Positions 3-63,999 of a DNA stretch of 64,000 nt are shown piece after piece (within the stretch, counting starts at the first letter, position 1; each line of letters begins with the position of its first letter). The notes beneath the pieces were generated by a model. That model was not told the origin of the DNA. It made no database searches and saw only the letters and a list, made by a program, of their open reading frames with translations. The stretch comes from Selaginella moellendorffii (Eukaryota > Plantae > Lycopodiophyta). Location: the NCBI RefSeq assembly GCF_000143415.4, contig NW_003314356.1, positions 248,001 through 312,000 on the forward strand. The letters are read 5' to 3'. The translations under genes and the position numbers were made by a program.

Positions 3-2277
3 AGAATCATTTATGGAGTCCCTTGAACCACATTCTACAGAATCAAAACTGAGTTCGAGGAACAAAGGGTTCAACAGGCAGTCCATGGGAACGACAGTAC
101 GCACAAAACCAGGGGTCATGTTGTATATGGAGAGGCAATCTTCAAGAGGTTTGTCGAGACATGTAGCGAGCAGCAACCACATAAAACCCGCCTCTTGGAA
201 GATGGAACACGAGACACCCAACGAGTTCTCCCTTCCATGTATACCAAGGGGGCCATATTGGAAGATGTGAATCGGGAACTCCAGAGTAATGGCTACAGGA
301 AGCTGAGCCAATCTAGATTTAGTAGATTATGGAGCAACAGGTTCAGGGATGTGAGTATAGGAAAGTACTCTAGCTTTTCAAAGTGTGACGAGTGCACTGC
401 TATCAAAATGGCTTTGTCGAAGAATTCTTGCAGCGCTCAAGAGCGAGAGATGTTGGTTAGAAGGCGGCTCGACCACAACATCGAGCAGAGAAGCTGTAGA
501 ACTGCATATTATCATAACAGGATTCTCTCCATGGAGAGACCTGACTCTTACCTCTGCATCATCCACGACAAAATGGACCAGAAAAAGACGTGCTTACTTC
601 GACTCAATCCTGCCCCCAAGCCAATCTCTTCATCCATGCAGCTGCCTGTGTCTCTGTTTGGCATAATCGCTCATGGGCATGGTGCCCAGAACTATGGGAA
701 CTTCTTTGTACCTCTATGGGGTGGCGGGGGTGCAAACATGATGATTGCGTCCCTAGCAAAACACTTAAGGTCTCTGCAAAGTGCGCAGACTGAGCTGAAC
801 GGCCAACCCTTGCATAAGGCCCTTGTCGATCGAACCCCATACAGGGTTAAGCTGGAGGAGGAGCAAAGGCTTGCAGTATCGCGTGGGGCCCCATGCCATC
901 CCAGTGAATATGTTGGCCGTCAGATTGTAGGGTTATCACGTGAGGCCTCATGCCATTCCGACGAGGCTGGTCGCCTGGTGAATGCACAGCCTCATCCAAA
1001 CGAAGCAGAATCTCAAGGAAGTTCTTGCGGCCGATGTGGCCTTCCACCCCATCTTCTGCTCCAAACAGACAATGCTGGCAGTGAGAACAAAAACATGTAC
1101 GTCTTCGCGTACTTGGCGATGCTTGTTGCCAAAGGCATATTTGAAACGGTTACACTTGGCTTTCTCATGGTTGGGCACACTCATGAAGACGTCGATGCCA
1201 TGTTCAGTCACCTGGCAGAGTCCCTCCGGCGATCCAATGTCCTCACCCTCCCACAACTTTACGATGAATTCCAAAATTGCATCAAAGGCACTGTTGAAGC
1301 TGCACTTCTGACAGAGGTTCCAGACTTTAAGGGGTTTGTAAGAGGCTACATCAGGGACGGATCCGAAATGCTGATTGGCCACTCCAAGCCTCTTCAGTTT
1401 CATTTCAGCATGTGTGACGGTGCTCCAGTGATGAGGTACAAGATGAGAGAATGGGACACAGTGTGGCTGCCAGTGGACGGCATTGAACTCTTCAAGAGAG
1501 ATCCCATAACTGGGGAACCTATGATTCCTCAAGGTTCCCCACGGCTGATGCACCCGGATGGACTCAAAGTCCAGGAAAGTATAGTGGCCGGGATTAGACA
1601 GCATATTGCCTTCTGGAAGAGGCGGTTGGTGTTTGGTGGAGAATCCTATTTTCAGAGGTGCAAGCCTTTGCTCGAATACTGGGAGAAGATTATATCTGCT
1701 ATCCAAAATGGGCCGGTTGTATATGAAGAATTGGAAGAGTCCTTTTGGCCAGAACCCAGAGCACCAGATAGTAGCGGAACAACGTCCTCTGGAAATGCAG
1801 TGATAGATAACGATGTTGAGGATCACTATTGTGGGCCGAGGAACAAGAAGCCGGATTCAGCATTCAATCCAGTACAGGTCTGCAAAGGAATGGTCGTGCT
1901 TGTCAGACCCAGTAATAAAAAACAAATGATATGGGTGGGGCGCTGCATCACTGATGCAGAGGAGGACGCGGAAACTAACTCCTTCAATGTAACTGTGGAG
2001 TGGTTCAAGCCAAGTTCCGGATATACGAAGGATTGCCTAGAAAAGAGATGGGTGCTGAATCCAAGGGATCCCAGCATGAGCATATCGGTGGATAATGTTG
2101 TGCATGGTTGGATGCGGAAGCAGAGTGCCACCATCACCTTGCCAGACCATGCAAGAGATGCAGCAAGAGCATTCATAACCCGGGTTCAAGGTGAGATTCA
2201 TTAATATTCCTTTACTAAGTTTCTAATGTATTTTATTTCAAGGTGAACAATCCGAATCTGAATCAGAGGAGGCGTGA
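3..2277 (+). pseudogene. Sola-like (DUF7869-type) transposase with one early in-frame stop and a probable short terminal exon
   Basis: Motifs FSKCDEC, IIHDKMDQ, LQTDNAGSENKN and FLMVGHTHEDVDAMFS (DDD triad). The frame of ORF 195-2204 runs upstream to a TGA at 24-26 within IYGVP*TTFYR, probably CGA>TGA. Splicing out 2191-2242 adds GEQSESESEEA*. Confidence 0.8.
2191..2242 (+). other. Putative 52-nt spliceosomal intron at the transposase 3' end
   Basis: CAAG|GTGAGA ... CTAAT ... TTTATTTCAAG|GT; AT-rich; removal skips the stop at 2202-2204. Confidence 0.6.
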
Positions 2278-8400: not shown

Positions 8401-9640
8401 AATCTTTAATTATTTACCTACTACAAAAGTTCCCATATCATGTACCACGCAAGATCAAAGGAAACAATTTGTCTTGAGGACATGACGATACTCAGTAGTC
8501 GGAGGAAGACTCTATAGAATTGGACATGATAATATATTACGAAGATGTGTATGATCACAAGAAGAGATACACGAGTTACTAGAAGAAGCCCATGCCAGTT
8601 GCTCTGAAGGGCATTTTGCAGAAGAAATTACAGCAAGGAAAATATTGCAAGCAAGCCTATAGTGGCCTATATTATGGAAAGACACTTCACAGTTTTGTTA
8701 AACTTGTGATATTTGTTAGTGTACACAATTTCCACCCAAGAAACAAACACAAGAACTAAATCCGACTATAGCAATGGAACCTTTCCAAAGATGGGGCCTA
8801 GATTTTGTAAGACCCATACAAAAGAGCAGCAATGGAAATCAATATATTTTGGTGGCAACAGATTATATGACAAAATGGGCAGAAGCCCAACCACTCAAGA
8901 AAGCAACAGCAAAGAATACAGCTAAGTTTCTTTATGAAACAATTATCACAAGATATGGATTACCTCAAGAAATAGTAACAAATAGAGGAACACATTTCCT
9001 CAATGAAACAATCAACATTTTATTAGATGCATTCTTCATCAAACATAAGAAATCTACACCATATTATCCACAAAGCAATGGCCAAGTCGAATCCACAAAC
9101 AAAACACTCAAGAATATACTCAAGAAAATAGTGCAAACCAATCTTAAAGATTGGGATAATAGAGTTTATGATGCTCTTTGGGCATATAAAACAGCATATA
9201 AAGTTTCAACAAATTCAACTCCATTCAAATTAGCTTATGGACTTGAAGCTTTGACACCACTTGAATATACTGTACCATCTTTGAGAATGGCAATTCAGCT
9301 GCACATTAATCAAGAAGAATCAATCAAGAAAAGATTGGCTATGCTAGAAAAGCTAGATGAAGAAAGATTATATGCTTTATGGACAATTGAAGCTATACAA
9401 GCAAGAAGAAAAACTTATCACGATAGAAAACAGACTATAAAGAAAACTGATAGATTTGAAGCTGGAAATTTTGTTCTATGGTATAGAGGAAATGTCGACA
9501 AAATAGGAGGCAAATTGGTACATCAATAGGAAGGACCACTCAAGATCATAAGTATGCAAACACCTGGCACAGTTCACTTAGCAACACTCGATGATGAAGA
9601 AATTCAAATAGTCAATCTCAACAAATTGAGAAAATATCAA
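5433..9640 (+). pseudogene. Decayed gag-pol of a non-chromoviral Ty3/gypsy LTR retrotransposon
   Basis: Gag LKGKALEWY; two CCHC knuckles (CTKCKNEGYSVTNC, CQICDREGHIAKNC); protease ILDGGSGLN; RT VIVPKKNGKLRIC near 7260; RNase H QIDASDYVLGAIL; integrase last (gypsy order). Many stops and frameshifts. Confidence 0.92.
8774..9529 (+). CDS. Integrase core fragment (rve), probably non-functional
   Basis: PFQRWGLDFV, ATDYMTKWAEA, IVTNRGTHF (second catalytic D changed to N), STPYYPQSNGQVESTNK. Confidence 0.9.
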   Translation: MEPFQRWGLDFVRPIQKSSNGNQYILVATDYMTKWAEAQPLKKATAKNTAKFLYETIITRYGLPQEIVTNRGTHFLNETINILLDAFFIKHKKSTPYYPQSNGQVESTNKTLKNILKKIVQTNLKDWDNRVYDALWAYKTAYKVSTNSTPFKLAYGLEALTPLEYTVPSLRMAIQLHINQEESIKKRLAMLEKLDEERLYALWTIEAIQARRKTYHDRKQTIKKTDRFEAGNFVLWYRGNVDKIGGKLVHQ

Positions 9641-10064: not shown

Positions 10065-13000
10065 GGGAAGCAGAACTACAGGAGAGGGAATTTGCGGCTT
10101 GGAGCTCCGGAGTGCGCACTCAGGAGGACTCATGGGCGGTAAACGAGAGGCTGCTGAACAGGGCCTTCTACAGAGGTATCCGCCCAGTCTCAGACTCACC
10201 ACCCATTCTTGGTCTCAAGGCAGAGGATGGAAAGTTGGTGGAGGATCAGCAAGGCATGCAAGAACTGGCACAAAGGTTCTACGAGCAGCTGTACACAGCA
10301 CAACCAGGGACTACAGCCAGAGCCCAGGCAGCAAAAAAGGTGTTGAAAACTCTGCGGAATAGAGTCCCACAGGAATGGAACAAACAACTCGTGGCAGATC
10401 TCACCATAGAAGACCTCCGCAAAGCCTTGGACAGATTGAGTGATGACAAAATGCCCGGGGTAGATGGACTGCCCCCGAGTTTCTTTCGGAGTAATTGGGA
10501 GGTGATTGGTCCGCTGATGATGGAGGCCTGGGCGAAGGCGCAGCAAGCAGGGCAGCTCCCGGCGGAGATACTGGAGGGCCAGATCGCACTGCTTCCAAAG
10601 AGAGGGGACCTTCAAGAGCTACGCAACTGGAGACCAATAACAATGCTCACCACAGCGTACAAAATCTACGCCAAGGCGATGGCGCTTAAATTGCAACCGG
10701 TGATGCCCATCATTATTCGAGAACAACAAACAGGCTTTGTACCAGGGAGACAGATTGCAGAGAATATCTGGACCTATCTCCTGGCCCAAAGATGGGCAAA
10801 GTCCTCGAGGCAGAATGTGGTGGCGTGGCTACTGGATTTCGAGAAGGCATACGACCGGGTGGACTGGGACTTCCTGGAGGACTGTATGAGACGGATAGGA
10901 ATCCCAGCGCCCATGGTAACACGCATCGCTCTCCTGTACCGGGGAGCATCAAGCAGGGTGGTCATCAATGGAGAAACAGGCCCGCGGTTTCGGCTAGGGA
11001 GGTCGGTGCGTCAAGGCTGCCCGTTGGCTCCGTACCTCTTCCTCATGGTTGCGGAGGCTCTAGGGGCATTCCTGGCGGAGGGTGAAGGAATCAGGGGCGT
11101 GGAGTTACCCAAGGAAAGACAGCAACTCCCCGGAACGCAAACGGTGGGAAGGGACCTGCTCGATAGCGCGTTTGCGGATGATACAGCACTCTTTCTGCTA
11201 GGTACCAAGGCTAACCTGGACACTGCAAGGGCCAGGCTAGAGGCCTTCAATGCAGCAGCAGGAGCGGCCATCAACTGGAACAAGTCGATAGGAATCAACT
11301 GGGGGGAATCTGACATAGAGGCGTGGGGACGCGACATCGACTTTCAGTGGCTACCACCAGGGGAGGACACACGCTACCTGGGAATTCAGGTAGGAGGTGA
11401 GTTCAAAGCTTCCACCCAGGACTCAGCACTGCTGCGGAGGACCAGAACAGCGATTCAGAAATGGGCGCCACGGAAACTGGGACTGCCGGCAAGGGTGGTG
11501 GTGGCGAAAAGCATCGTGTTGCCGTGTACGTGGTACCACCTCTCAGTATGGCCGGTTCTAGAGACTACACTCAAGCGCATAAGGTCCATGGTGCGCACGT
11601 ATGTGTGGAAGGGAGCGCTGGTCAGTGGCCGGACGATGGCCAAGGTGGCATGGCAGTCGACGGCGAGACCACGAGTTCTAGGCGGCTTGGGGATAATCGA
11701 CCCAAGTGACATGAGCAAGGCGCTGAGGTACAAAGTCATACTAATGGGCCTTCAACCGGGGGCCCAAGCTTGGAAGCTCTTGTTCAGGCAGAGCATGCTA
11801 GCCATCAGGCCGAAGCATGGATTCGCAAGAGTGTGGGATGAGGACCCCCGCTGGATGTTCGCGGAGGGCCAAACACAGGTGGTAGGGGGAGGCCAGTTGG
11901 TCCAGGGTCTCCATCGGCTCTGGAAGTCATTTCCAGTGACGCAGGTCATCCCGAACAGGGCAGAGGACTGGCTGAATCAGCCGCTATTTTTCAATGAGTT
12001 GTTCAAGGCAGGAGACAGGACACTAGGCCGAGAGAACCACTACACCATATGGAGGCGGGTACACCAAGGAGGCTTCAGGACAGTCAAACAACTAGTTGGA
12101 GTGGTAGATCCGGATCCACAGAAATCATCCCGGCGCTTCCAAGTTTTTGGGCCAGGGAAGTGGCGGGACGTGAAGTGGGATCTACTGAAGCTACTGCGGG
12201 CAGTGACAGAGGCACGGACAGTGGATAAATGGCCAGCAAGAAGACTACACGCTGGGGACTTTGTGGCAATTCAAAAGGAGGAAACGTCGGATGGCGAGCA
12301 AGTACCACTTGGGAAATGGACTCGAGCATTCACGATGCCAACCCCAGCATGGAATGAGGGGGAGATTGAGGTGTGGTTTGTGACAGAACCAGAAAAGAAC
12401 CTCGGTAGGCCTTTTCGTGTAGTGAGAGGCGACACACTCCTCGAGGCGGGGAATCCCCAACAGATGCCGCAGGTCACGGACGATGAAGTGAAAGGACGAA
12501 TCCGGGTTCTAAGACAGACAGCAACTCGGACAGAAGTGGTAGAGTCACCATGCTGGCTAGAAGGAGAGGGACGGCTAGTATGGTGGAGGAAAGAGTTAAT
12601 AGAAGACCTGGACTGGGACCCAGCAGCGTGGAGACGCGGGGCGAACAGCTTCTTCACTTACGAGGTCAAGGACGCGCGGAACGGTTTGATGGTGAACAGG
12701 GAATTTGAGAGAGAAGAAATCCCACGACTGTGGCAAAAGTGGATCACGCTAGGAGTGGAGGCGGACCAGGTGATTGACAATACTGTGGCGTTCTGGAAAC
12801 TACCGATCCAGGAAAAATCGAAGATAACCTCTTGGCTCGTGGCGACGAATGGGCTGCCAGTAGGCCAGCGATTTCAAGCGGAGAATGCTCGCAAGTGTCC
12901 GGAATGCGGGGAACTGGAGACGGTCACACACCTCCTCTGGGACTGTGACGTGGCCAAGGAGACGTGGCGGCAGGTAGCAAAAGCGACGAGGGAACTAGGG

Positions 13001-13656
13001 GACAAGCAGGACTTCGAAATTCGAGAAGGGGACGTCACCCAATGGTTTCCAGAGGCAAGGGGACCATGCACAGGAGCAGCTTGGCGGAAGATCGGGTGTT
13101 GGGGACGCTCAGGATGGGGCACCCGAGTTAGGTGGGACGCGGTAGGCGCCGAAGTTGGGACTACAGTGTGGGAGGCCCTTGGACGGGTGAGATGGGAGGT
13201 ATGGCGGGCTTCCGGGGTACAGGCACTCTGGGAGGCTCGGAACCGCAACCACTTCGAAGGGCAGTGCGCTCGGATTTCAGCGATCATGGCGATTTGGTGG
13301 AGGCTCACACTAGCTGCTATCCGCTTGAGGGATACGCTGCTCCAGGAGCATGGGAAAAACAGGGAGGCACTCACAGCTTGGCGACGACTATGGACTCCGT
13401 GCTACGGAACTGAACACGAGGGGGAGGTCAAGTGGAAATGGAGACCTTCGGACACGGTAACAAAGGAGGCTCGACGTGGCGATCTGGCGCTGGATGCACT
13501 GCGGAGGCGACGACCACAGCAGCCACGATTGGAGGGCAGCGATCACTACTAGGTGGAGAATTGCAAGACAGCGTAGTTGAGTGAACAGCGCTAAGGGATT
13601 CTTGCTTTTTTGTATCAGTCCCTAAGGGACTTGGAGAAATGTACATACACGTTGCA
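10065..13656 (+). mobile_element. 5'-truncated L1-clade LINE with 18-bp TSD
   Basis: ACGAATATAGAAAGAGCA at both 10047-10064 and 13657-13674; GC-rich insert in an AT-rich host; no endonuclease domain. Confidence 0.93.
10112..13552 (+). CDS. LINE ORF2 fragment: reverse transcriptase plus C-terminal zf-RVT
   Basis: KMPGVDG, NWRPITML, LDFEKAYDRV, SVRQGCPLAP, AFADD, RYLGI and CPECGELETVTHLLWDC in an uninterrupted 1146-codon frame. Confidence 0.95.
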   Translation: MRTQEDSWAVNERLLNRAFYRGIRPVSDSPPILGLKAEDGKLVEDQQGMQELAQRFYEQLYTAQPGTTARAQAAKKVLKTLRNRVPQEWNKQLVADLTIEDLRKALDRLSDDKMPGVDGLPPSFFRSNWEVIGPLMMEAWAKAQQAGQLPAEILEGQIALLPKRGDLQELRNWRPITMLTTAYKIYAKAMALKLQPVMPIIIREQQTGFVPGRQIAENIWTYLLAQRWAKSSRQNVVAWLLDFEKAYDRVDWDFLEDCMRRIGIPAPMVTRIALLYRGASSRVVINGETGPRFRLGRSVRQGCPLAPYLFLMVAEALGAFLAEGEGIRGVELPKERQQLPGTQTVGRDLLDSAFADDTALFLLGTKANLDTARARLEAFNAAAGAAINWNKSIGINWGESDIEAWGRDIDFQWLPPGEDTRYLGIQVGGEFKASTQDSALLRRTRTAIQKWAPRKLGLPARVVVAKSIVLPCTWYHLSVWPVLETTLKRIRSMVRTYVWKGALVSGRTMAKVAWQSTARPRVLGGLGIIDPSDMSKALRYKVILMGLQPGAQAWKLLFRQSMLAIRPKHGFARVWDEDPRWMFAEGQTQVVGGGQLVQGLHRLWKSFPVTQVIPNRAEDWLNQPLFFNELFKAGDRTLGRENHYTIWRRVHQGGFRTVKQLVGVVDPDPQKSSRRFQVFGPGKWRDVKWDLLKLLRAVTEARTVDKWPARRLHAGDFVAIQKEETSDGEQVPLGKWTRAFTMPTPAWNEGEIEVWFVTEPEKNLGRPFRVVRGDTLLEAGNPQQMPQVTDDEVKGRIRVLRQTATRTEVVESPCWLEGEGRLVWWRKELIEDLDWDPAAWRRGANSFFTYEVKDARNGLMVNREFEREEIPRLWQKWITLGVEADQVIDNTVAFWKLPIQEKSKITSWLVATNGLPVGQRFQAENARKCPECGELETVTHLLWDCDVAKETWRQVAKATRELGDKQDFEIREGDVTQWFPEARGPCTGAAWRKIGCWGRSGWGTRVRWDAVGAEVGTTVWEALGRVRWEVWRASGVQALWEARNRNHFEGQCARISAIMAIWWRLTLAAIRLRDTLLQEHGKNREALTAWRRLWTPCYGTEHEGEVKWKWRPSDTVTKEARRGDLALDALRRRRPQQPRLEGSDHY

Positions 13657-54369: not shown

Positions 54370-57300
54370 TATTAGGTGCCAGCTTTAACCACGTGATCAA
54401 TGTCAGTCAAAAGGAGGCTCAATGGTATATTAAGGCATGTTAGGGTAAGGGACTTAACCTACCCTAAGGCTCATAGTGAAGCAGTGGCACAATAGAGCTT
54501 TTGAGGTAGCTTAAAGGTGGTTAGGTGGTGAGGAACCTCAAAAGGTGGCATAGCATAGTCTAGAGAGAATAAATCTTTATCTTTTTATGCCAGATCATAA
54601 CATTGGTATCAAAAAAGTTGGTTGCGATGGCCGACCAAGTTGAAAGCTGGAATCCTATTATCGATGGTGGTGCTAAAGATAGTGCCAATAGGGCTATGGA
54701 GGTTTGGACCATTCAAGATGTTGTTCAAAAGCTGCAAGCCCTTAATTGAAATCAGCAAAAGATGCAAGATGAGATGCATGGCATGATGGATACCATGCAT
54801 GAGCATGTTGAGGCACTCAAGGTTGGACATAGTAGCACTCCAAGTAAGCCTTCCTTGGTAGATTGACTCAAGATCTCAACCTTTTCCAATGATGGTGGTG
54901 TGGCTAGCCAATGTGAAAATGTTCTTGATTGCTAGGGGAACTCCAAATGTAGAGGCTTTACTAGCTATTCCAATGGTTTTGTGTGATGTGGTCTTTGGTG
55001 GTGGAATTAGTTTGAGGAGTCTCATGTTGCAGACAAGAAACCACTAGTGTCTACCATGGATGAGTTTGAGGTTGCTTTTCATTTACATTTTGCCCCTCAC
55101 TACAATGTGGAAAATGCTCGTACAAAACTTCGATATTTCAGCAAGGGAAAATGGATTATATTATTGAGAAGTTTACTCGCTTAATTAACTATGTTCCAAC
55201 GAAGGATCCAGATCAAAACAAGTCCTAGTTCATTGATGGCCTTCATAATGAGAACATGCGGCAACACTTGCATAATTCTCAACCTATAAAGAGTTTCGAG
55301 GAGCTATTTGATGCGGCTTGTTGACTTGATAATGTTAAGCACAAGTCTTGCAAGAATTTCAGGAGTCCTTCTATCAAGAATCGTCATGATGATTGCCATG
55401 GATACAAGGATGGGAACAAACACCACAAGTTGAAGTCTATGGTGACTACTTCAGATGCAAAGGGGTCAAAGAAGTAGAAGTTCTTTGTGAAGAATTATAG
55501 ACAGGGTTGTCATCATTGTGGCGAGCTTGAACATTACAAGGCTGATTGTCCACAGCTGAAAAACAAGCAGCAGGGCAAAATGAATGGCTAATCTTCTACT
55601 GACAGTACGTCAGATACTAAAAAGTTGCAAGCTTTGCAATGTGAAGATGACAGGGACGACCATTCCAATCGAAGGAAGAAGCTTTGAATTGTTGCTCATC
55701 AACTCAACTATGTGTGGAACAAGATGGACCTCAAGGATACTTGTGAATCAGCTTTAATGCTGGAGGGCATGTTCTGTGGCGATCTAGTGCAAATTTTACT
55801 TAATAATGGGAGTAATGGCAATTTTTTTTTAGCAAAGTTTGTTGCGGAGCATGGCTTGGTCACACAAGGAGTCCTTTCCTAAATGGTGGAAGGTGCAACT
55901 ACCTCTGCTTAGCATTTCAATGGTTGTGTAGAGAGGCTGGAACTATTGGTTGGCAAAACCACACTTCTAGAAACTTTTTATCTCATAGATATCCATCGTA
56001 TGGATCTCATTCTTGGGATGCCATGATTGGTGAAGGTGGATCTAGCAATAAAGTGGAGTATTAAACGTGTCTCATTGGAGTACAGTGGCATTAAAGATGT
56101 GTGGTTTGGAGAGGGAGTTTAACCTCTAGTTGTTATGTTGTTTGCTACATCTTTGAAGTGGGCTTGTCGTAATAGAAAAACACTTTCAAGTTACTTGCTG
56201 TTTATTCATGACTTGGGGGATTAAGGCACGTGTGGGGGAGAAGCAATAGTACGGGATATACTCGATAAGTTTTCTAATATTTTTCCATCTGAACTTCCTC
56301 GTGGGTTGCCTCCACTACGAGGTGTGGAGCATGGGATTATGTTGGAGCTAAGGATAAGGCCAATTTACCAGCATCCATTTCAGTTAAATTATGTAGAGGA
56401 GCAAGAAGTTCAATGACAAGTCAAGGAATTACTTGAGTTTGGATTTATTCAACCAAGTAAGTCTCTGTTTGGTACTCCAGTCTTACTTGTAAAAAAGAAG
56501 GATGATTCAATACGGATGTGTATTGACTACCATGCCTTAAGAAGACAATGAAGGATAAAATGCTGATGTCACATGTGAATGATATCTTAGACAAGCTTAG
56601 TGAAGCACGAGTGTTTACCAAGATTGATTTGAGGAGTAGATATCATCAAATTGTAATGGATGATGCATCTATCTCTAAGACAGCATTCAATACAAGCTTT
56701 GGACATTTTGAGTTTACAGTTATGCCGTTTGGTTTGACAAATGCACCAGTGACATTTACTCGATTAATAACAAGGTATTTAAGCATTATCTTTATGAGTT
56801 TATGGAGATTTTATTGGATGATATTCTTGTTTTCAGCAAGAATATGGAGGAGCATATGGTGCATTTGTGCAAGGTTCTTTTATTACTATATGACAACAAA
56901 CTTTATGCAAAAAAGAGCAAATATGAATTTGCAAAGTTGGAGGTGGAATATTTAAGCCATATTGTGACATCTAAGGGTGTCAAGACAGATCCAAGGAAGG
57001 TGGCTGTAGTGGAGAACTGGCCTACACCAACTTCAGTGGCTAAGTTACGCAATTTTCTTTGTATAGCTAGTTACTACTAATGTTTCTAGCATATACCAAT
57101 TCCTTTAACACAATTGTTATGCAAGAACATCCCATTCAAGTGGAAGAAGCCACAAGAAGAGAGTTTTGTGGCACTGAAACAATTATTGAGCAAGGCTCCA
57201 GTGCTTTGCATTGCTAATCCATCAAAACTTTATGAGGTGACATGTGATGTGAGTGGTTATGCACTAGGAGGAATTCTCATGCAAAAGGGACAACCTATTG

Positions 57301-58499
57301 TATATGAGAGTCAAACTTTGAATCTCATAGAACAGTGTTATTTCACATATGAGCCTCTATTGTTCATACTTTGCAAACATGGCGACATTATCTTTATAGT
57401 GCTATGTTTGTGGTGTTGACAGATCACAAACCACTTGTGTATCTTTTCACACAGAAGGAATTGAACACTAGGCAAGTTCGTTGGATGGTCAAACTCATGT
57501 ACTTTAGGGAGTTTCTTATTGAGCACCATCCTAGAAAATCAAATATGGTGGCATCTAGAGGCCAGTCATTTTGGGGGGAAGAAGATGTATGAGTTGATTT
57601 TTAGTGCAAGTGCAATTTTTATTGGAGGAATATGAAGGCTCTCGAGTATTGTAAATCATGCGAGCTTTGTCAATGAGTACAAGTGCCATAGGAGTTATTG
57701 ATGTAGTATCTCAATGGACTTCATCACTTAGTTGCCACGGTGGAATTAGGATTGCATTTGAGTAAGGATATTCAAGATAAGCTTAATTCTGAAATAACTG
57801 GTCTAGCCACCGAACTTGATGAGATTCTAATGGTGATTTGCAGGCAGCTCAGAATAAAGTGGAGAAGCTTGCTAATGAGCATTGCCAATTCCAAGAATAT
57901 AAAGTGGCTGATCTCGTCTTCATGCGAGTGATCTTTCCGTCATGTGAGCAGCAGAACACCTTCATGCCTTTATGGATAGGGAAGAGTGACAAACTTTCCC
58001 ATTGATATATTGGTCCATGTGAAGTGCTAGAGTGCATTTGTAAAGCAGCTTATTAGGTGTGACAACCAGCAGGGGTGAAAATTCATCCGATATTTAATGT
58101 TAGCTAGTTGAAAGGTGTATTATCTCAGAGTGATGGGCCCAATGCCTCCTTGATGTATATGGTTGTGGAAGATGGACCAAGAGCTTGAGTAGGGTTCCCC
58201 AAAAAGTGTGATCACTGGTACAACTCATCCTTGGGACAAGGACTTTGTTGGGGGGGGGGGGGCAATTGTTAAGTGCCAGCTTTGACCACATGGTCAATTT
58301 TGGTCAAAAGGAGGCTCAAGGGTATATCAAGGCATGTTAGGGTAAAGGATTTAACCTACCCTAGGGCTCATAGTGGAGCAACGGCGTAGTGGAGTTTTTG
58401 AGGTAGTTCAAGGGTGGTTAGGTGGTGAAGAACCTCAAGAAGTGGCATAGCATAGTCTAAGGAGACTAGATCTCTATCTTTTTGCACTAGATCTTAACA
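54370..58499 (+). mobile_element. Decayed Ty3/gypsy element (family C) with 233-bp LTRs at 54370-54602 and 58267-58499
   Basis: TSD ATGGC/ATAGC; PBS TGGTATCA; G-run PPT; CHHCGELEHYKADC knuckle; RT FTKIDLRSRYHQI, VMPFGLTNAP, LLDDIL; RNase H TCDVSGYALG; integrase largely deleted. Confidence 0.92.
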
Positions 58500-58843
58500 A
58501 TAGCCCATTCTTGACCACTAGTTTTTTGCTTCTATCTTTTGATTGTTGCACCATATAATATAGGATCACTACAACCATCCTTGAGGTATCCATTTTTGTT
58601 CCATAGCAAAGGCTCTATCTTGCCAAGTCCATATTCACCTTTAGTAAGTCTCTTCAACATTATTTGTTGTGGGCTCTACCTACGGCCCAACATTATGACC
58701 CTCTTATACATCTTTTTTAGAGACTTCTTTCTTGGACTCACCATATTAACACAACATATTTCCCTTAAGTTTCCTTCTCATTTGGTCACCTTGACTAAAT
58801 CACATTATTACTAATAATTCAAATCAACACTTTGAACTAGAAT

Positions 58844-59256
58844 GTAAGCGACTAAATTTTCCATTCTACTTTAGTCACTTAACCACACCTCCAACCACTT
58901 GGAGGAGTCTCATTCACAACCTCCATAAGTCCTATTTTAGACTTGGGCTTGCCAGTCCCAAGAATGGCATCCCTGCCATTCAACCTTTGCACTTGATCTT
59001 AGTGCTCCACGTGTCCGATCCCATGACCGACACCCCAAGGTACCACCGACATATCAACCCGTTACACTAAGGCCATGCCCCTTTACCTTGGTCACACTGG
59101 TGGTCTAACACCACCTGCATCACAGTCCCATCTCTCAAGGACTGAGCCATCTGTCCATGAGTGATCATTCTAGATCCACTCCTTAGCATCCTTAAGATGC
59201 CCACAAACATGGGGAATTGCCTTCCCCAATATCCCTTTTTTTAGTTTTCACCAAGT
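58844..59256 (-). repeat. 3' part of another family A LTR, abutting family A internal sequence and cut by family B
   Basis: TGTAAGCGACTAAATTTTCC is the reverse complement of the LTR end. Confidence 0.85.
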
Positions 59257-61659
59257 TGTAAGCCACAAATTTTTCCTTTCCAATTTGCTAGCTTACCTCA
59301 TCTATTTGTCCGACACTGCCTTGGCTTTTGCTAGGTTCCCTCGCCAAGGTTCTCGCCTATGGTACCAACTCCTACTTGATCCTACTTGCTTTCAGCTACT
59401 CACTGCACGAGCAACGGAGCGTTAGCCATCCATCCACGGATTCCCAATCTCTCCTAATCCACCTCCCCGGGTTAGACTGGACTTAAGGTTCAGCTACACT
59501 CCCCGCAAGCACAAGCAGCCAAGCACACTAAGCTTCCAGGTTTCTAACATCCCTTGGTACCACAAGACTTGATAATGGGACCCTCTAAATCCCAAGTCTT
59601 GAGTGCAACACTTGCTTTGGGACGCCGGGGCGAAACACCGTGGCCTAGCGGCCCGGTAAGGGTACCTCTACCGCCCCACTTCCATCCCGAAGGAAGGCCC
59701 AAGCCCCTACGAAGGGCGAGGACCAATGAGCCGCATGGTACTCAAGTGGGGCACCACTCCACATGAGCCGGGAGCACCGCAATCGGTTTCCCTTTCGGGA
59801 GTGGGAGCTGCTCTTGAGCACTTCCTTGGATGGCCCCTCCGGCACCAACCAAGTCCATGCTCACTCCCACCCAAGGCCCCTCGGTCCCAGTCCCAACCTC
59901 AAGTCGGTTTGGGAGCCCCACTGGAGAGTCCCTTCAAAACTGGTTCCTGAACCTCACTATCCCTACTATACTTTTGGAACCCCCTTGCAGCCCCCCCCCC
60001 CCCCTTTGGGACACGCACACTTTGGGCTTTCACCCCTTGACCCGTATTAGTATTTGGACTTAGTCTCTGGCTCGATCTCGGACCCGATTTCGGATCCGAC
60101 TTCGGATTCGGTTTTGGACTCGATCTCGGACTCGGTCTCGGACCCGATCTCGGACCCGATCTCGGACTCGATCTCGGACCCGACTTCGGACTCGACTTCG
60201 GACTCGACCTCGGACTCGACCTCGGACTCAGTCTCGGACCCGATTTCGGATCTCGGACTCCGTCTCGAACTCAGTCCCTGTTAGGTGCCAGCTTTGACTA
60301 CGTGGTCAACATCGGTCAAAGGGAGGCTCAAGGGTATATTAAGGCATGTTAGGGTAAGGGACTTAACCTACCCTAGGGCTCACAGTGGAGCGGTGGTGCA
60401 GTGGAGCTTTTGAGGTAGCTCGGGGGTGGTTGGGTGGTGAGGAACCTCAAGAGGTGGCGTAGCATAGTCTAGGGCAACGAGATCTTTGTCTTTTTGCGCC
60501 AGATCATAACATTGGTATCAGAGCGATAATTGGCGATGCTCATTGGCAAACTGAGTGTGTGAATCAGATGGTGGAGGATATGCTACGTTGTAGCATTGGT
60601 CAAAGGCAAGGACAGTGGGATCTATATCTTCCATTGGTGCAATTTGCTTACAACAATAGCCAACATAGTGGAACCAAGCTAAGTCCTTACTTTGCGATGT
60701 TTGGAAGGCATCCTCGAACAGCGGTGGAGTTGGGATTGCATTTGAGTAAGGACGTTCAATAAAAGCTTGATTCCGAGGCAACTGATCTGGCCACAGAACT
60801 TGATGAGATTTTGGTGGTGTGCAAACGGAATTTGAAGGCAGCTCAGGATAGAGCGGAGAAGTTTGCTAATGAGCATCGCCAATTCCGGGAATATAAGGTG
60901 GGTGATCTCGTCTTTGTGCGAGTGATCTTTCCATCAAGTGAGCGGCGGAACACCTTGGTGCCTTTATGGATAGGGAAGAGTGATAAACTCTCCCATTGAT
61001 ATGCTGGTCCATATGAAGTGCTGGAGCGCATTGGTAAAGCAGCTTATCGAGTGTGGCTGCCAGCTGGGGTGAAAATTCATCCGGTATTTTATGTCAGCCA
61101 GTTGAAAGGTGTACTATCTCGGAGTGACGGGCCCAATGCCTCCTTGATGTATACGGCTGTGGAAGATGGACTAGGAGCTTGAGCAGGATTCCCCAGAAAG
61201 GGTGCTCACCGGTACAACTCGTCCTTGGGACAAGGACTTTGTTGGGGGGGAAGAATTGTTAGGCGCCAGCTTTGACTACGTGGTCAACTTCGGTCAAAGG
61301 GAGGCTCAAGGGTATATTAAGGCATGTTAAGGTAAGTGACTTAACCTACCCTAGGGCTCACAGTGGAGCGGCGGCGCAGTGGAGCTTTTGAGGTATCTCG
61401 GGGGTGGTTGGGTGGTGAGGAACCTCAAGAGGTGGCGTAGCATAGTCTAGGGCAACGAGATCTTTGTCTTTTTGCGCCAGATCATAACAGTCCCCGAGTC
61501 GGTCTCGGACTCGATTCCGGACTCTATCTCGAACTCGGTCTCCGAGTCGGTCTTGGACTCGATCTTCGACTTGGTCCCATCCGATGAACTCTTTGTCATT
61601 TTGGTCATGCTTTCGGGATTCCTTTAGCCTACGACACCTCGGCGAGTTGGTTCCTTACA
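59257..61659 (-). repeat. 3' LTR of chromovirus family B (~1190 bp net of the nested family C insertion)
   Basis: TGTAAG...CTTACA on the minus strand; PPT at 61660-61673; GATCGAGTCCGA-type 12-mer repeats; shares GGGTGAAAGCCCAAAG and CCAAAAGTATAGTAGGG with the family A LTR. Confidence 0.88.
60279..61489 (+). mobile_element. 1.2-kb TRIM-like deletion derivative of family C
   Basis: LTRs 60279-60511 and 61257-61489 (7 differences counted by eye); TSD GTCCC; PBS TGGTATCAGAGC; G-rich PPT; internal sequence is the integrase 3' part only. Confidence 0.95.
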
Positions 61660-61738
61660 ACTCCACCACCCATCAAAGAAGTTCGATGCCCACATCGAAC
61701 GTCTCTTTTTTATCCTACAACTTGTTGACCATGTTTAT

Positions 61739-61968
61739 GGGGGCATCCCCCCACTTAGCGGTGTGCCTAAGTTAGCCTCCCCGGCCAAGAGCCCATGACA
61801 ACGGAATATAGGTGTCCCTATACTCCTCACCTCACCACGCCCTAGTATGGGGTCGGGACTTGAATCCAGCCTTGCTTTACTAGGGGGTTGGGACTCAAAC
61901 CCAACCTCCGTAGAATACGTCTACGGATTCGACATCCCCACAGGGAGTCGGGCGTAGCTCCCTACACC
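61739..61968 (-). ncRNA. Family B 3'-UTR structured element, homologous to the family A element
   Basis: Same hairpin order and loop sequences with different but still paired stems. Confidence 0.7.
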
Positions 61969-62445
61969 TGGTCGACCTAGCTAACCCATGCTAATTAGCT
62001 TACCTTCGGTGCACCTTCGGGTCCCAACATATGCCACTTGCTCAACTTTGCAAATTGATATTTTTAATTGAACTTTGCATAAGTACATAGAGTTCTGCCT
62101 TGCAGAAATTCCTCCACTAGATCTCACACGTTCGCTAGGTTCTCCTCCGGTTCCCATGTTGCTTCGCAGTGTGGAAATCCTTTCCACTTCACATGGAACT
62201 CTCTCACCTCGCGTCTTTGTCGCTTGCTCTTGCGCGCATTGAGGATGGCCTCGACTTCGTATTCCTCTTCCCCTTGGATAACCTCAGGTAAAGGTCTTAC
62301 TTGGTCCTTGCAAAGCGGATCCTCAAAGTACGGCTTGAGTAAGTTCACGTGGAACACTGGGTGCATCTTCCCCATCTCTCGAGGAAGTCGGAGTCGGTAA
62401 GCCACTTTACCGATTCGTGCCTCAATCTTGTAAGGCCCCGCGAAC

Positions 62446-62497
62446 CTGCTTAAGGAACTCAAGATCAATTCATTTATAGGAATACATGCATTTTTAC
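62446..62497 (-). other. Putative 52-nt GT-AG intron in the integrase
   Basis: CAAAG|GTAAAA...TTGAT...TTCCTTAAGCAG|GTTC; removal restores KLTQRFAGPY. Confidence 0.8.
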
Positions 62498-62915
62498 CTT
62501 TGGGTCAACTTTCGGCTGATCCCACTTGGTAGCCTAAGGTTCTTGGTGTTCAGCCACACCTTCTCCCCAGCTTGGAACTCTACATCTCGGCGCTTTAGGT
62601 TTGCATACTTGGTTTGCCTTTGTTGAGCCCGTTCCAAGGAATCCCTCACTAGATTCCAAATGTTGAATCTTTCCGCCGTGAATGCCTCCACTGCGGGTAG
62701 CTCTCCATGATACTCAGCCATGCCGAGTTCCACAGGACCTTCAATAGCTCGCCCATTGATGACTTCCCATGGACTCACCCCGATACTCGAATGTGGTGAG
62801 TTGTTATAACACATTTCCGCAAGTCCCAAATGACTTACCCAATCGGTCTGGTCTCCCTAGACATAGCATTGCAAATAATCCTCCAGCTGCCTATTCACCC
62901 TTTCCGTTTGTCCGT

Positions 62916-62962
62916 CTGTCAAGAAGTGTTAGTGTCACCAAACTTGACTTAATACCCCATAC
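62916..62962 (-). other. Putative 47-nt GT-AG intron in the integrase
   Basis: ACAG|GTATGG...CACTAAC..TTCTTGACAG|ACGGA; removal restores HPQTDGQTERVN. Confidence 0.85.
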
Positions 62963-63410
62963 CTGTCTGTGGGTGATAGGCTGTACTGAATTTCAACTTG
63001 AAGCTCTATTTCGTTAAAGTGGGAATTGTCATTATCCCACTTGTAAAATAAGGTTTCCAAACCTTTATATAGTATATAAATATAACAAAATTTAACTGCA
63101 TTGAGGCACATACCATTTTATTTTAAACAAGGAAATGTCTACTCAATCACTTCTCCTCCCCCTGCCACTGCTTCACCTCTCTCTTCTCCTTGTCATCGTC
63201 GTCCAATTTCTTTCCATCCTTTTAATATTGGCTCAGTTGCTCCGAGTCTAGGTGGAGCCCAAGTCCCCATTCAATCTTTACTTTCCCCTTATTAATAAAA
63301 CAACTTCGTAGACTTCCAATAACATGCTGTAACACTTCTAGTATAATGCAAATCCTCTCAAAGAATTGTCTTTTAATATTAATACAATGGCATGGAACCC
63401 CATGCCATAA

Positions 63411-63492
63411 TAAGTTACATTTTTAAATAAATACATGCCATCTCAGACTGTTAAGTTACATTTTTAAATAAATACATGCCATCTCAGACTGT
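63411..63492. repeat. 41-bp perfect tandem duplication
   Basis: TAAGTTACATTTTTAAATAAATACATGCCATCTCAGACTGT x2. Confidence 0.9.
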
Positions 63493-63999
63493 TATTTTTT
63501 TCCTCCAACGCTTATACAATAATCTTGGAATTTCATCACTCTCCACACTATCAGGATTTAAACCCAATAGTAATGCCATCTCTTCTCTAATACGTCCACG
63601 CTCATGTTCAGTGGTCAAAGAACCCATCCGGTTGAGCAGATTATGGAGATGCGGATAGTGCTTGGCTAGACAATATACATGCCATAAATGATGACTGGTG
63701 TCTGTCCGATCAAATGGCTTCTGATATACCGTTCCATCTGCCATTTGGTTGATTTCTGCAGCCACCTCCTGGACTGGCCGGTTCTCTATCACCATCGCTC
63801 CAAGCCATTTTGCAAGGTCCCCCAGAACATACGGTTTCTTCTCCCTAGTTTCCATATTGCAAGAGATGGGGTGCACTGCATATGTGTGCGTGTTCGCTGC
63901 AGTTTTAATCGGCGAGTCATCGATGATGAGGATTTCACTTGACCTAGCAGTCCGGTTCATCACTACAGCCTCTGGCTTGACGAAGATGGGCTTGCTACC
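63484..63999 (-). CDS. C-terminal part of an FCP1/NIF-like HAD phosphatase-domain protein (5' end outside the window)
   Basis: KPIFVK...EILIIDDSPIKTAAN...AVHP...L..WL resembles the C-terminal half of plant FCP1-homology domains; the frame is open to the window edge. Confidence 0.6.
   Translation of the reverse strand, partial: GSKPIFVKPEAVVMNRTARSSEILIIDDSPIKTAANTHTYAVHPISCNMETREKKPYVLGDLAKWLGAMVIENRPVQEVAAEINQMADGTVYQKPFDRTDTSHHLWHVYCLAKHYPHLHNLLNRMGSLTTEHERGRIREEMALLLGLNPDSVESDEIPRLLYKRWRKKITV

Follow-up and report, generated by a model that had tools for sequence, protein, structure and literature searches.

Two likely spliceosomal mini-introns within the integrase of a high-copy Ty3/gypsy chromovirus of Selaginella moellendorffii

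Retroelements replicate by way of RNA and are therefore expected to lose introns. Among plant LTR elements, a 2025 review singles out just two notable cases that depart from this rule, Ogre and EVADE (PMC12786077). At one end of the window analysed here (the whole stretch of 64,000 nt from Selaginella moellendorffii, contig NW_003314356.1, positions 248,001 to 312,000 of the forward strand), an LTR-retrotransposon integrase is interrupted by two short inserts with the ends of introns. A sequence-only reading of this locus had suggested that the family may need spliced mRNA to make its integrase while packaging unspliced RNA, which would make splicing a switch on transposition. The locus therefore raises the question of whether the inserts are genuine introns that are removed from RNA and shared by the family, and, if they are, what they might do for an element whose DNA copies retain them.

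The feature lies on the minus strand and carries the hallmarks of a Ty3/gypsy chromovirus integrase: the HPQ(T/S)DGQ(T/S)E motif, a GPY/F (SH3-like) domain and a C-terminal chromodomain. Because Pfam places SH3_Tf2-1 (2e-15), Chromo (4.5e-14) and Integrase_p58_C (2e-6) on the third exon, we read the feature as the C-terminal half of such an integrase; the integrase core upstream of HPQT is absent from this copy. Its parts, given in the order of the element's own strand and with the basis of each assignment, are as follows.

62963..63000, minus strand: integrase exon 1 remnant, ...KLKFSTAYHPQT, which ends ...FSTAYHPQT at 62963 (translation).
62916..62962, minus strand: intron 1, 47 nt, GT..AG, phase 1, within an Asp codon, four codons upstream of the catalytic Glu (read and checked by script).
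62498..62915, minus strand: integrase exon 2, (D)GQTERVN...KLTQ, with the catalytic Glu and a private in-frame TAG at 62857-62859 (translation).
62446..62497, minus strand: intron 2, 52 nt, GT..AG, phase 2, which splits the KLxxR|FxGPY motif of the C-terminal SH3-like domain (read and checked by script).
62127..62445, minus strand: integrase exon 3, (R)FAGPYKIE..., with SH3_Tf2-1 (GPY/F) and a chromodomain of group I type, ended by a private TGA at 62124-62126 (Pfam).
62064..62126, minus strand: continuation of the frame past the private TGA (DLVEEFLQ...), to a TAA at 62064-62066 (tails of homologues).
61490..62063, minus strand: 3' untranslated region together with the initial portion of the 3' LTR (directly adjoins the coding sequence; 12-nt repeat at 61479-61593).
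59240..60278, minus strand: the remaining 3' LTR region past a nested element, with an uncertain lower boundary (tandem 12-nt repeat, 60040-60262; 14 consecutive C, 59991-60004).

The copy in the window has long been dead and survives as a fragment, with a truncated 5' end, two private stops and another element nested in its LTR. Homology breaks at 63000/63001, where 28 DNA contigs and one RNA-type contig continue into sequence that is not found in the window; this contig sequence past 63000 reads as further integrase core. In sister copies, a sense codon stands in place of the TAG at 62857-62859 in 97% of DNA contig depth and in place of the TGA at 62124-62126 in 95%, so both stops are private to this copy. 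The reading frame of the family probably ends about 20 codons past the TGA, at the TAA at 62064-62066; homologues share a tail, ...EPEENLxNAxxxxxE(F/Y), with the frame end of the window copy. Read on the element's own strand, the 14 C at 59991-60004 form a poly-G tract. The 64-kb window holds no second copy of the integrase of this family, and an Rfam search of the window gave zero matches.

The nested element that interrupts the LTR region (60279-61489; 1,211 bp) is flanked by a 5-bp duplication, GTCCC. It belongs to a small gypsy element that is present twice in the window and whose 233-bp LTRs match the published SM-Fogey in size (PMC3350952). The nested copy is internally deleted, its LTRs are 97% alike, and TGGTATCAGAGC follows its 5' LTR; the other copy, at 54370-58499, is 4.1 kb long and has its reverse transcriptase at 56548-56955. 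Just past the truncation point of the integrase fragment, an AT-rich stretch contains a perfect 41-nt tandem duplication (63411-63492), and beyond it an ORF of 159 aa on the minus strand (63484-63963) includes ILIIDDSP. A weak pointer (0.92) leads from this ORF to NIF/CTD-phosphatase-like proteins; Pfam found no match in it, and an exact look-up of the ORF at the window end found none either. Possibly this ORF represents a host-gene exon beside the point of truncation.

The rest of the window is also rich in repeats. Mobile-element remains in its AT-rich left part include an ORF of 669 aa with DUF7869 (195-2201, plus strand) and one of 251 aa with an integrase core, rve (8774-9526, plus strand). 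They are followed by an uninterrupted LINE ORF of 1,146 aa (10112-13549, plus strand; RVT_1 and zf-RVT), which has 74% identity to a Selaginella moellendorffii protein, the next matches being at 31-39%. Over about 36 kb, from 14000 to 50000, the plus strand is strongly purine-rich, with a GC skew of 0.2-0.28. Within this region are eight arrays of a 12-nt unit, GTCCGAGATGGA; its reverse complement is the 12-nt repeat found at 60064-60255 in the LTR region. Within the 36 kb, blocks return at intervals of 5.7-7.6 kb and show an 86% match in reverse to 58843-59236, and it is solely the arrays that contain long ORFs. These blocks may be non-coding elements with related LTRs.

The sequence of the two inserts fits introns in several respects. 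In intron 1, a CTAAC would place the branch A 14 nt upstream of the 3' end, and in intron 2, TTGAT is a candidate branch-point motif. By script check, the AT content is 60% in intron 1 and 69% in intron 2, against 47-50% in exons 2 and 3. Translation into intron 1 reaches a stop after four codons, and translation into intron 2 does so immediately. Removal of the inserts rejoins HPQT to DGQTE and KLTQ-R to FAGPY, and each insert by itself breaks the integrase frame. For a random insert, the chance of GT...AG ends is 1/256, and for two inserts about 1.5e-5, with frame restoration not counted in these figures.

The protein relatives give the same picture. A homologue search with the exon 3 ORF gave a best identity of 53%, an exhaustive search of representative proteins with exon 2 gave 48%, and the protein matches were ordinary intronless chromoviruses throughout. 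In all of the intronless relatives that we examined, HPQTDGQ(S/T)ER and KLxxR(F/Y/W)xGP(F/Y) are contiguous and equally spaced. Another gypsy family in the window (family C) reads KLSH*YAGPY, without an insert. What the sequence-only reading had described thus holds at each point open to checking: reading of the minus strand and a script both returned AT-rich inserts of 47 and 52 nt with GT...AG ends and the motifs CTAAC and TTGAT; their exact removal restores the conserved integrase motifs with the motif spacing of the intronless relatives; translation places the first insert four codons before the catalytic Glu and has each insert break the frame; and family C has no insert at the position next to GPY.

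We also considered an origin of the inserts as introner-like elements, that is, as mobile intron copies, and rejected it: introns 1 and 2 are dissimilar, and neither matched elsewhere in 86 kb (the window together with a second Selaginella locus, L001). Locus L001 has no copy of the intron-bearing family.

We then examined DNA from sister copies. A DNA run (X1) contributed 11,544 contig pieces that match a 1-kb stretch at a likeness of at least 85%, most of them 90-100% alike. Summed depth was 0.78 million in the bin of intron 2 and 0.68 million in that of intron 1, and 0.57-1.28 million in the exon bins; sister-copy DNA contigs thus cover both inserts at about exon depth, which answers the question, raised with the first description, of whether the inserts are private. 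Polymorphisms lie within the inserts too. Two sites in intron 1 have frequencies of about 50-60%, so intron 1 is present in both major variants of the family. Among the best 15 of 23 joints in the DNA contigs there were no skips of 47 or 52 nt. These best 15 of 23 are single contigs with depths of 126-294, and an intronless subfamily of any size would outrank them. Rare intronless DNA copies may exist, the joint survey being of the best 15 of 23.

RNA-type sequence lacks the inserts. One contig of 734 nt (record 9) in X15, a 31-million-letter assembly presumed by guess to be RNA, joins 62112-62443 straight to 62496-62897, a skip of 52 nt. Since AC stands at both edges, the cut is ambiguous by 2 nt, and the skip gives the same product as removal of 62446-62497. 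Another X15 contig (record 11) joins 62839-62915 straight to 62963-63000, so that intron 1 is skipped exactly. In the bin that lies within intron 2, X15 has a depth of 0. The exact skip of intron 1 was also seen in the raw reads of X22, a declared RNA-seq run, where the binned depth of one read resolves to 62812-62915 and 62963-63000; this read has 142 nt on the stretch and 8 nt past 63000. Two contigs of presumed RNA and one raw read therefore lack the inserts exactly across the junctions, where a search for spliced RNA had been proposed. The outcome that had been named as pointing to chance repair fillers, inserts confined to one copy and no spliced reads, is not what we found: the inserts are present in sister DNA and are skipped in RNA.

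More widely, 11-39% of exon words were found in nine RNA-type assemblies from five studies. Matches to raw RNA-seq reads were few, with five reads in X22 and two in X23 in about 12% of each run, that is, very low expression. Three raw RNA reads (one from X22, two from X23) retain the 5' part of intron 2. These may be unspliced RNA, or carry-over of DNA from a repeat of very high copy number. At the sites that match 62533, 62724, 62736 and 62751, the RNA has rare alleles, which account for 0-6% of the depth in DNA. They include a premature stop at the site that matches 62751 and are shared by X15 and X22, which come from two separate studies. Because of these rare alleles, we assign the spliced RNA to a decayed sister copy, and one such copy seems to be the main source of the family's RNA in the X15 and X22 samples. 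From this RNA it is clear that both introns are recognised by the spliceosome; as the product of a decayed copy, it is not evidence of expression of an active element.

To ask more of the family as a whole, we turned to the exons, and classified the codon changes at the best 40 of 156 variable sites, in contigs that are short and whose depth is not equal to copy number. At family polymorphisms in exons 2 and 3 (sites at which DNA depth is split 10-90%), 13 changes were synonymous and 1 was nonsynonymous. The chance expectation for synonymous changes at such sites is 22-34% (binomial p 7e-7 to 7e-6). At the differences in the same exons that are private to the window copy (judged against at least 90% of depth), only 4 were synonymous and 9 nonsynonymous, both stops being among the nine; the contrast between family and private sites has a Fisher p of 0.0013. 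Exons 2 and 3 have been under purifying selection since the intron-bearing variants diverged, and the window copy has decayed neutrally. Since they are under such selection, exons 2 and 3 are translated, and their translation needs splicing, which is the sole way to join them to the rest of pol.

A published family matches this element in its description. SM1-Galahad has hundreds of copies that are about 95% alike, none of them intact; in its reconstruction, ORF1 ends after the integrase core and is followed by two short ORFs, the last of which (113 aa) holds a group I chromodomain with a substituted chromo-box, and its LTRs are longer than 1 kb with poly-G tracts of 11-25 bp (PMC3350952). The window copy shares with it the chromovirus type and the group I chromodomain, and its ORFs at 62494-62829 (111 aa) and 62124-62468 (114 aa, with the chromodomain) fit the three-ORF layout. 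The 14 C at 59991-60004 and the thousands of DNA contig pieces, most of them 90-100% alike, may correspond to its poly-G tract and its many similar copies. The family is therefore probably SM1-Galahad, matched by description rather than by the sequence of the reconstruction. Where we differ is in the reading of the breaks: PMC3350952, whose text never uses the word intron, takes them to mean that intact copies are lacking. The two introns would account for the unexplained three-ORF layout of SM1-Galahad. For SM2-Galahad, the nearest relative, a single unbroken ORF spanning integrase and chromodomain has been published (PMC3350952), which makes a gain of the introns within the SM1 lineage probable. 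Recent gain, which had been put forward as an alternative, is no rival to a reading of the inserts as spliced introns. Their sizes of 47 and 52 nt fit the host, since the intron length distribution of Selaginella is fungus-like (short) and stands apart from that of other land plants (PMC6157073).

We consider it very probable that the inserts are genuine U2-type spliceosomal introns, present family-wide in a high-copy Ty3/gypsy chromovirus of Selaginella, most likely SM1-Galahad. From the reading frames, translation of unspliced RNA is predicted to stop a little short of the catalytic Glu of the integrase. RNA that lacks intron 1 only would give an integrase ending KLTQR*, without the SH3-like and chromo domains, and a full integrase with its chromodomain would come solely from doubly spliced RNA. 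The proposal that spliced mRNA is needed for a complete integrase thus gains support from three sides: the frames, the insert-lacking RNA and the selection on the exons.

Several other explanations have to be weighed against this one. That the inserts are chance fillers private to one decayed copy is almost certainly wrong, as we found no point in its support, thousands of sister DNA contig pieces cover both inserts with variants of their own, and the published reconstruction of the family has the same breaks (PMC3350952). Insert-less contigs of RNA type could in principle also stem from rare insert-free DNA copies, without any splicing. The RNA nature of X15 is a guess and the joints seen are the best 15 of 23, which leaves some room for such copies. 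However, those best 15 of 23 include no skip of 47 or 52 nt where exon depth reaches hundreds of thousands, X15 has no depth inside intron 2, in contrast to the DNA, where the form with the introns predominates, and the skip of intron 1 also occurs in a read from a declared RNA-seq library; we therefore regard this origin as highly improbable. Scarcely better placed, and in our judgement very unlikely, is a non-autonomous, disabled lineage, in which the inserts arose in a master copy that was multiplied in trans by an intact relative such as SM2-Galahad, the GT..AG ends being incidental and the splicing cryptic. The authors of PMC3350952 found no intact copy, a closely related intact family is present in the same genome, and the spliced RNA seen here stems from a decayed copy, all of which would suit such a lineage. 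Selection on exons 2 and 3 is unexpected under it and speaks against multiplication of a dead lineage in trans alone: 13 of the 14 common polymorphisms are synonymous, and intron 1 is in both major variants. It would also have to account for canonical ends, exact restoration of the frame and exact removal in each of two independent inserts.

The remaining alternative accepts that the introns are real and spliced, and denies that they act as a switch on integrase supply; they would be kept for expression or export, as a shield from silencing, or as tolerated passengers. This we hold to be possible, if doubtful. The data establish the presence of spliced and possibly of unspliced RNA rather than regulation, and there is a precedent in the surveillance of intronless mobile elements, which is reportedly known from another system (HUSH). 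Against it, unspliced and half-spliced RNA would give truncated integrase, so that splicing would limit output anyway; with both introns so placed that partial splicing truncates the integrase, splicing limits integrase output whatever else it does. This alternative and the main reading part only over the reason for the retention of the introns, which may be dosage control, improved expression or export, or a shield from the silencing of intronless transcripts.

If the introns are genuine, as we think, a mechanism can be outlined. Because new DNA copies keep the introns, unspliced RNA must presumably be the template for reverse transcription, and spliced RNA would somehow be excluded from it. 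The element would then need two pools of RNA, as Ogre and retroviruses do, and the share of spliced RNA could set the amount of integrase. Splicing may in this way act as a regulated switch on transposition, coupled to the packaging of unspliced RNA, as the sequence-only reading had proposed. A more elaborate version is that the family reached very high copy number in dependence on splicing by the host at two integrase sites, and that differential splicing of three RNAs, yielding no active integrase, an integrase without the targeting chromodomain, or the full enzyme, sets both the rate of integration and the choice of target, spliced RNA being barred from reverse transcription by a linked mechanism. 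We offer this version as speculation and think it unlikely to hold in full.

The closest known system is Ogre, a Ty3/gypsy element of the Tat lineage in pea and Medicago; as cited in PMC6317226 and PMC12786077, it has an intron in the coding sequence of its polyprotein that is removed from part of the transcripts and kept in DNA copies, and its removal lets the entire polyprotein be translated. The family in the window would work likewise but is no member: it is a lycophyte chromovirus with a chromodomain, and both of its introns are in the integrase. These two are also much smaller than the Ogre intron, and lie before the catalytic Glu and between the core and the SH3-like/chromo part. In the Ty1/copia elements EVADE, BARE and copia, splicing yields a short GAG mRNA (PMC12786077), and there too it parts the element's RNA into pools of differing coding capacity. 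However, splicing in those elements removes coding sequence for the sake of more Gag, and their unspliced RNA already encodes the complete polyprotein, whereas here the unspliced RNA would lack a complete integrase. In retroviruses and in Cer1 of C. elegans, the RNA that stays unspliced is the genome, and some products are made from spliced messengers, according to PMC10309623; splicing there opens extra genes (env, CERV), and in the window family it would repair the pol frame itself.

In full-text searches, we found no report of introns inside the integrase of an LTR retrotransposon. What is new here is a chromovirus with two mini-introns inside its integrase, the enzyme that completes transposition, which are kept in a large family whose downstream exons are under selection. 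Annotation pipelines that require one open frame would score such families as dead. The family offers a natural system for asking how spliced RNA stays out of reverse transcription, and, further, whether the host can throttle transposition via splicing.
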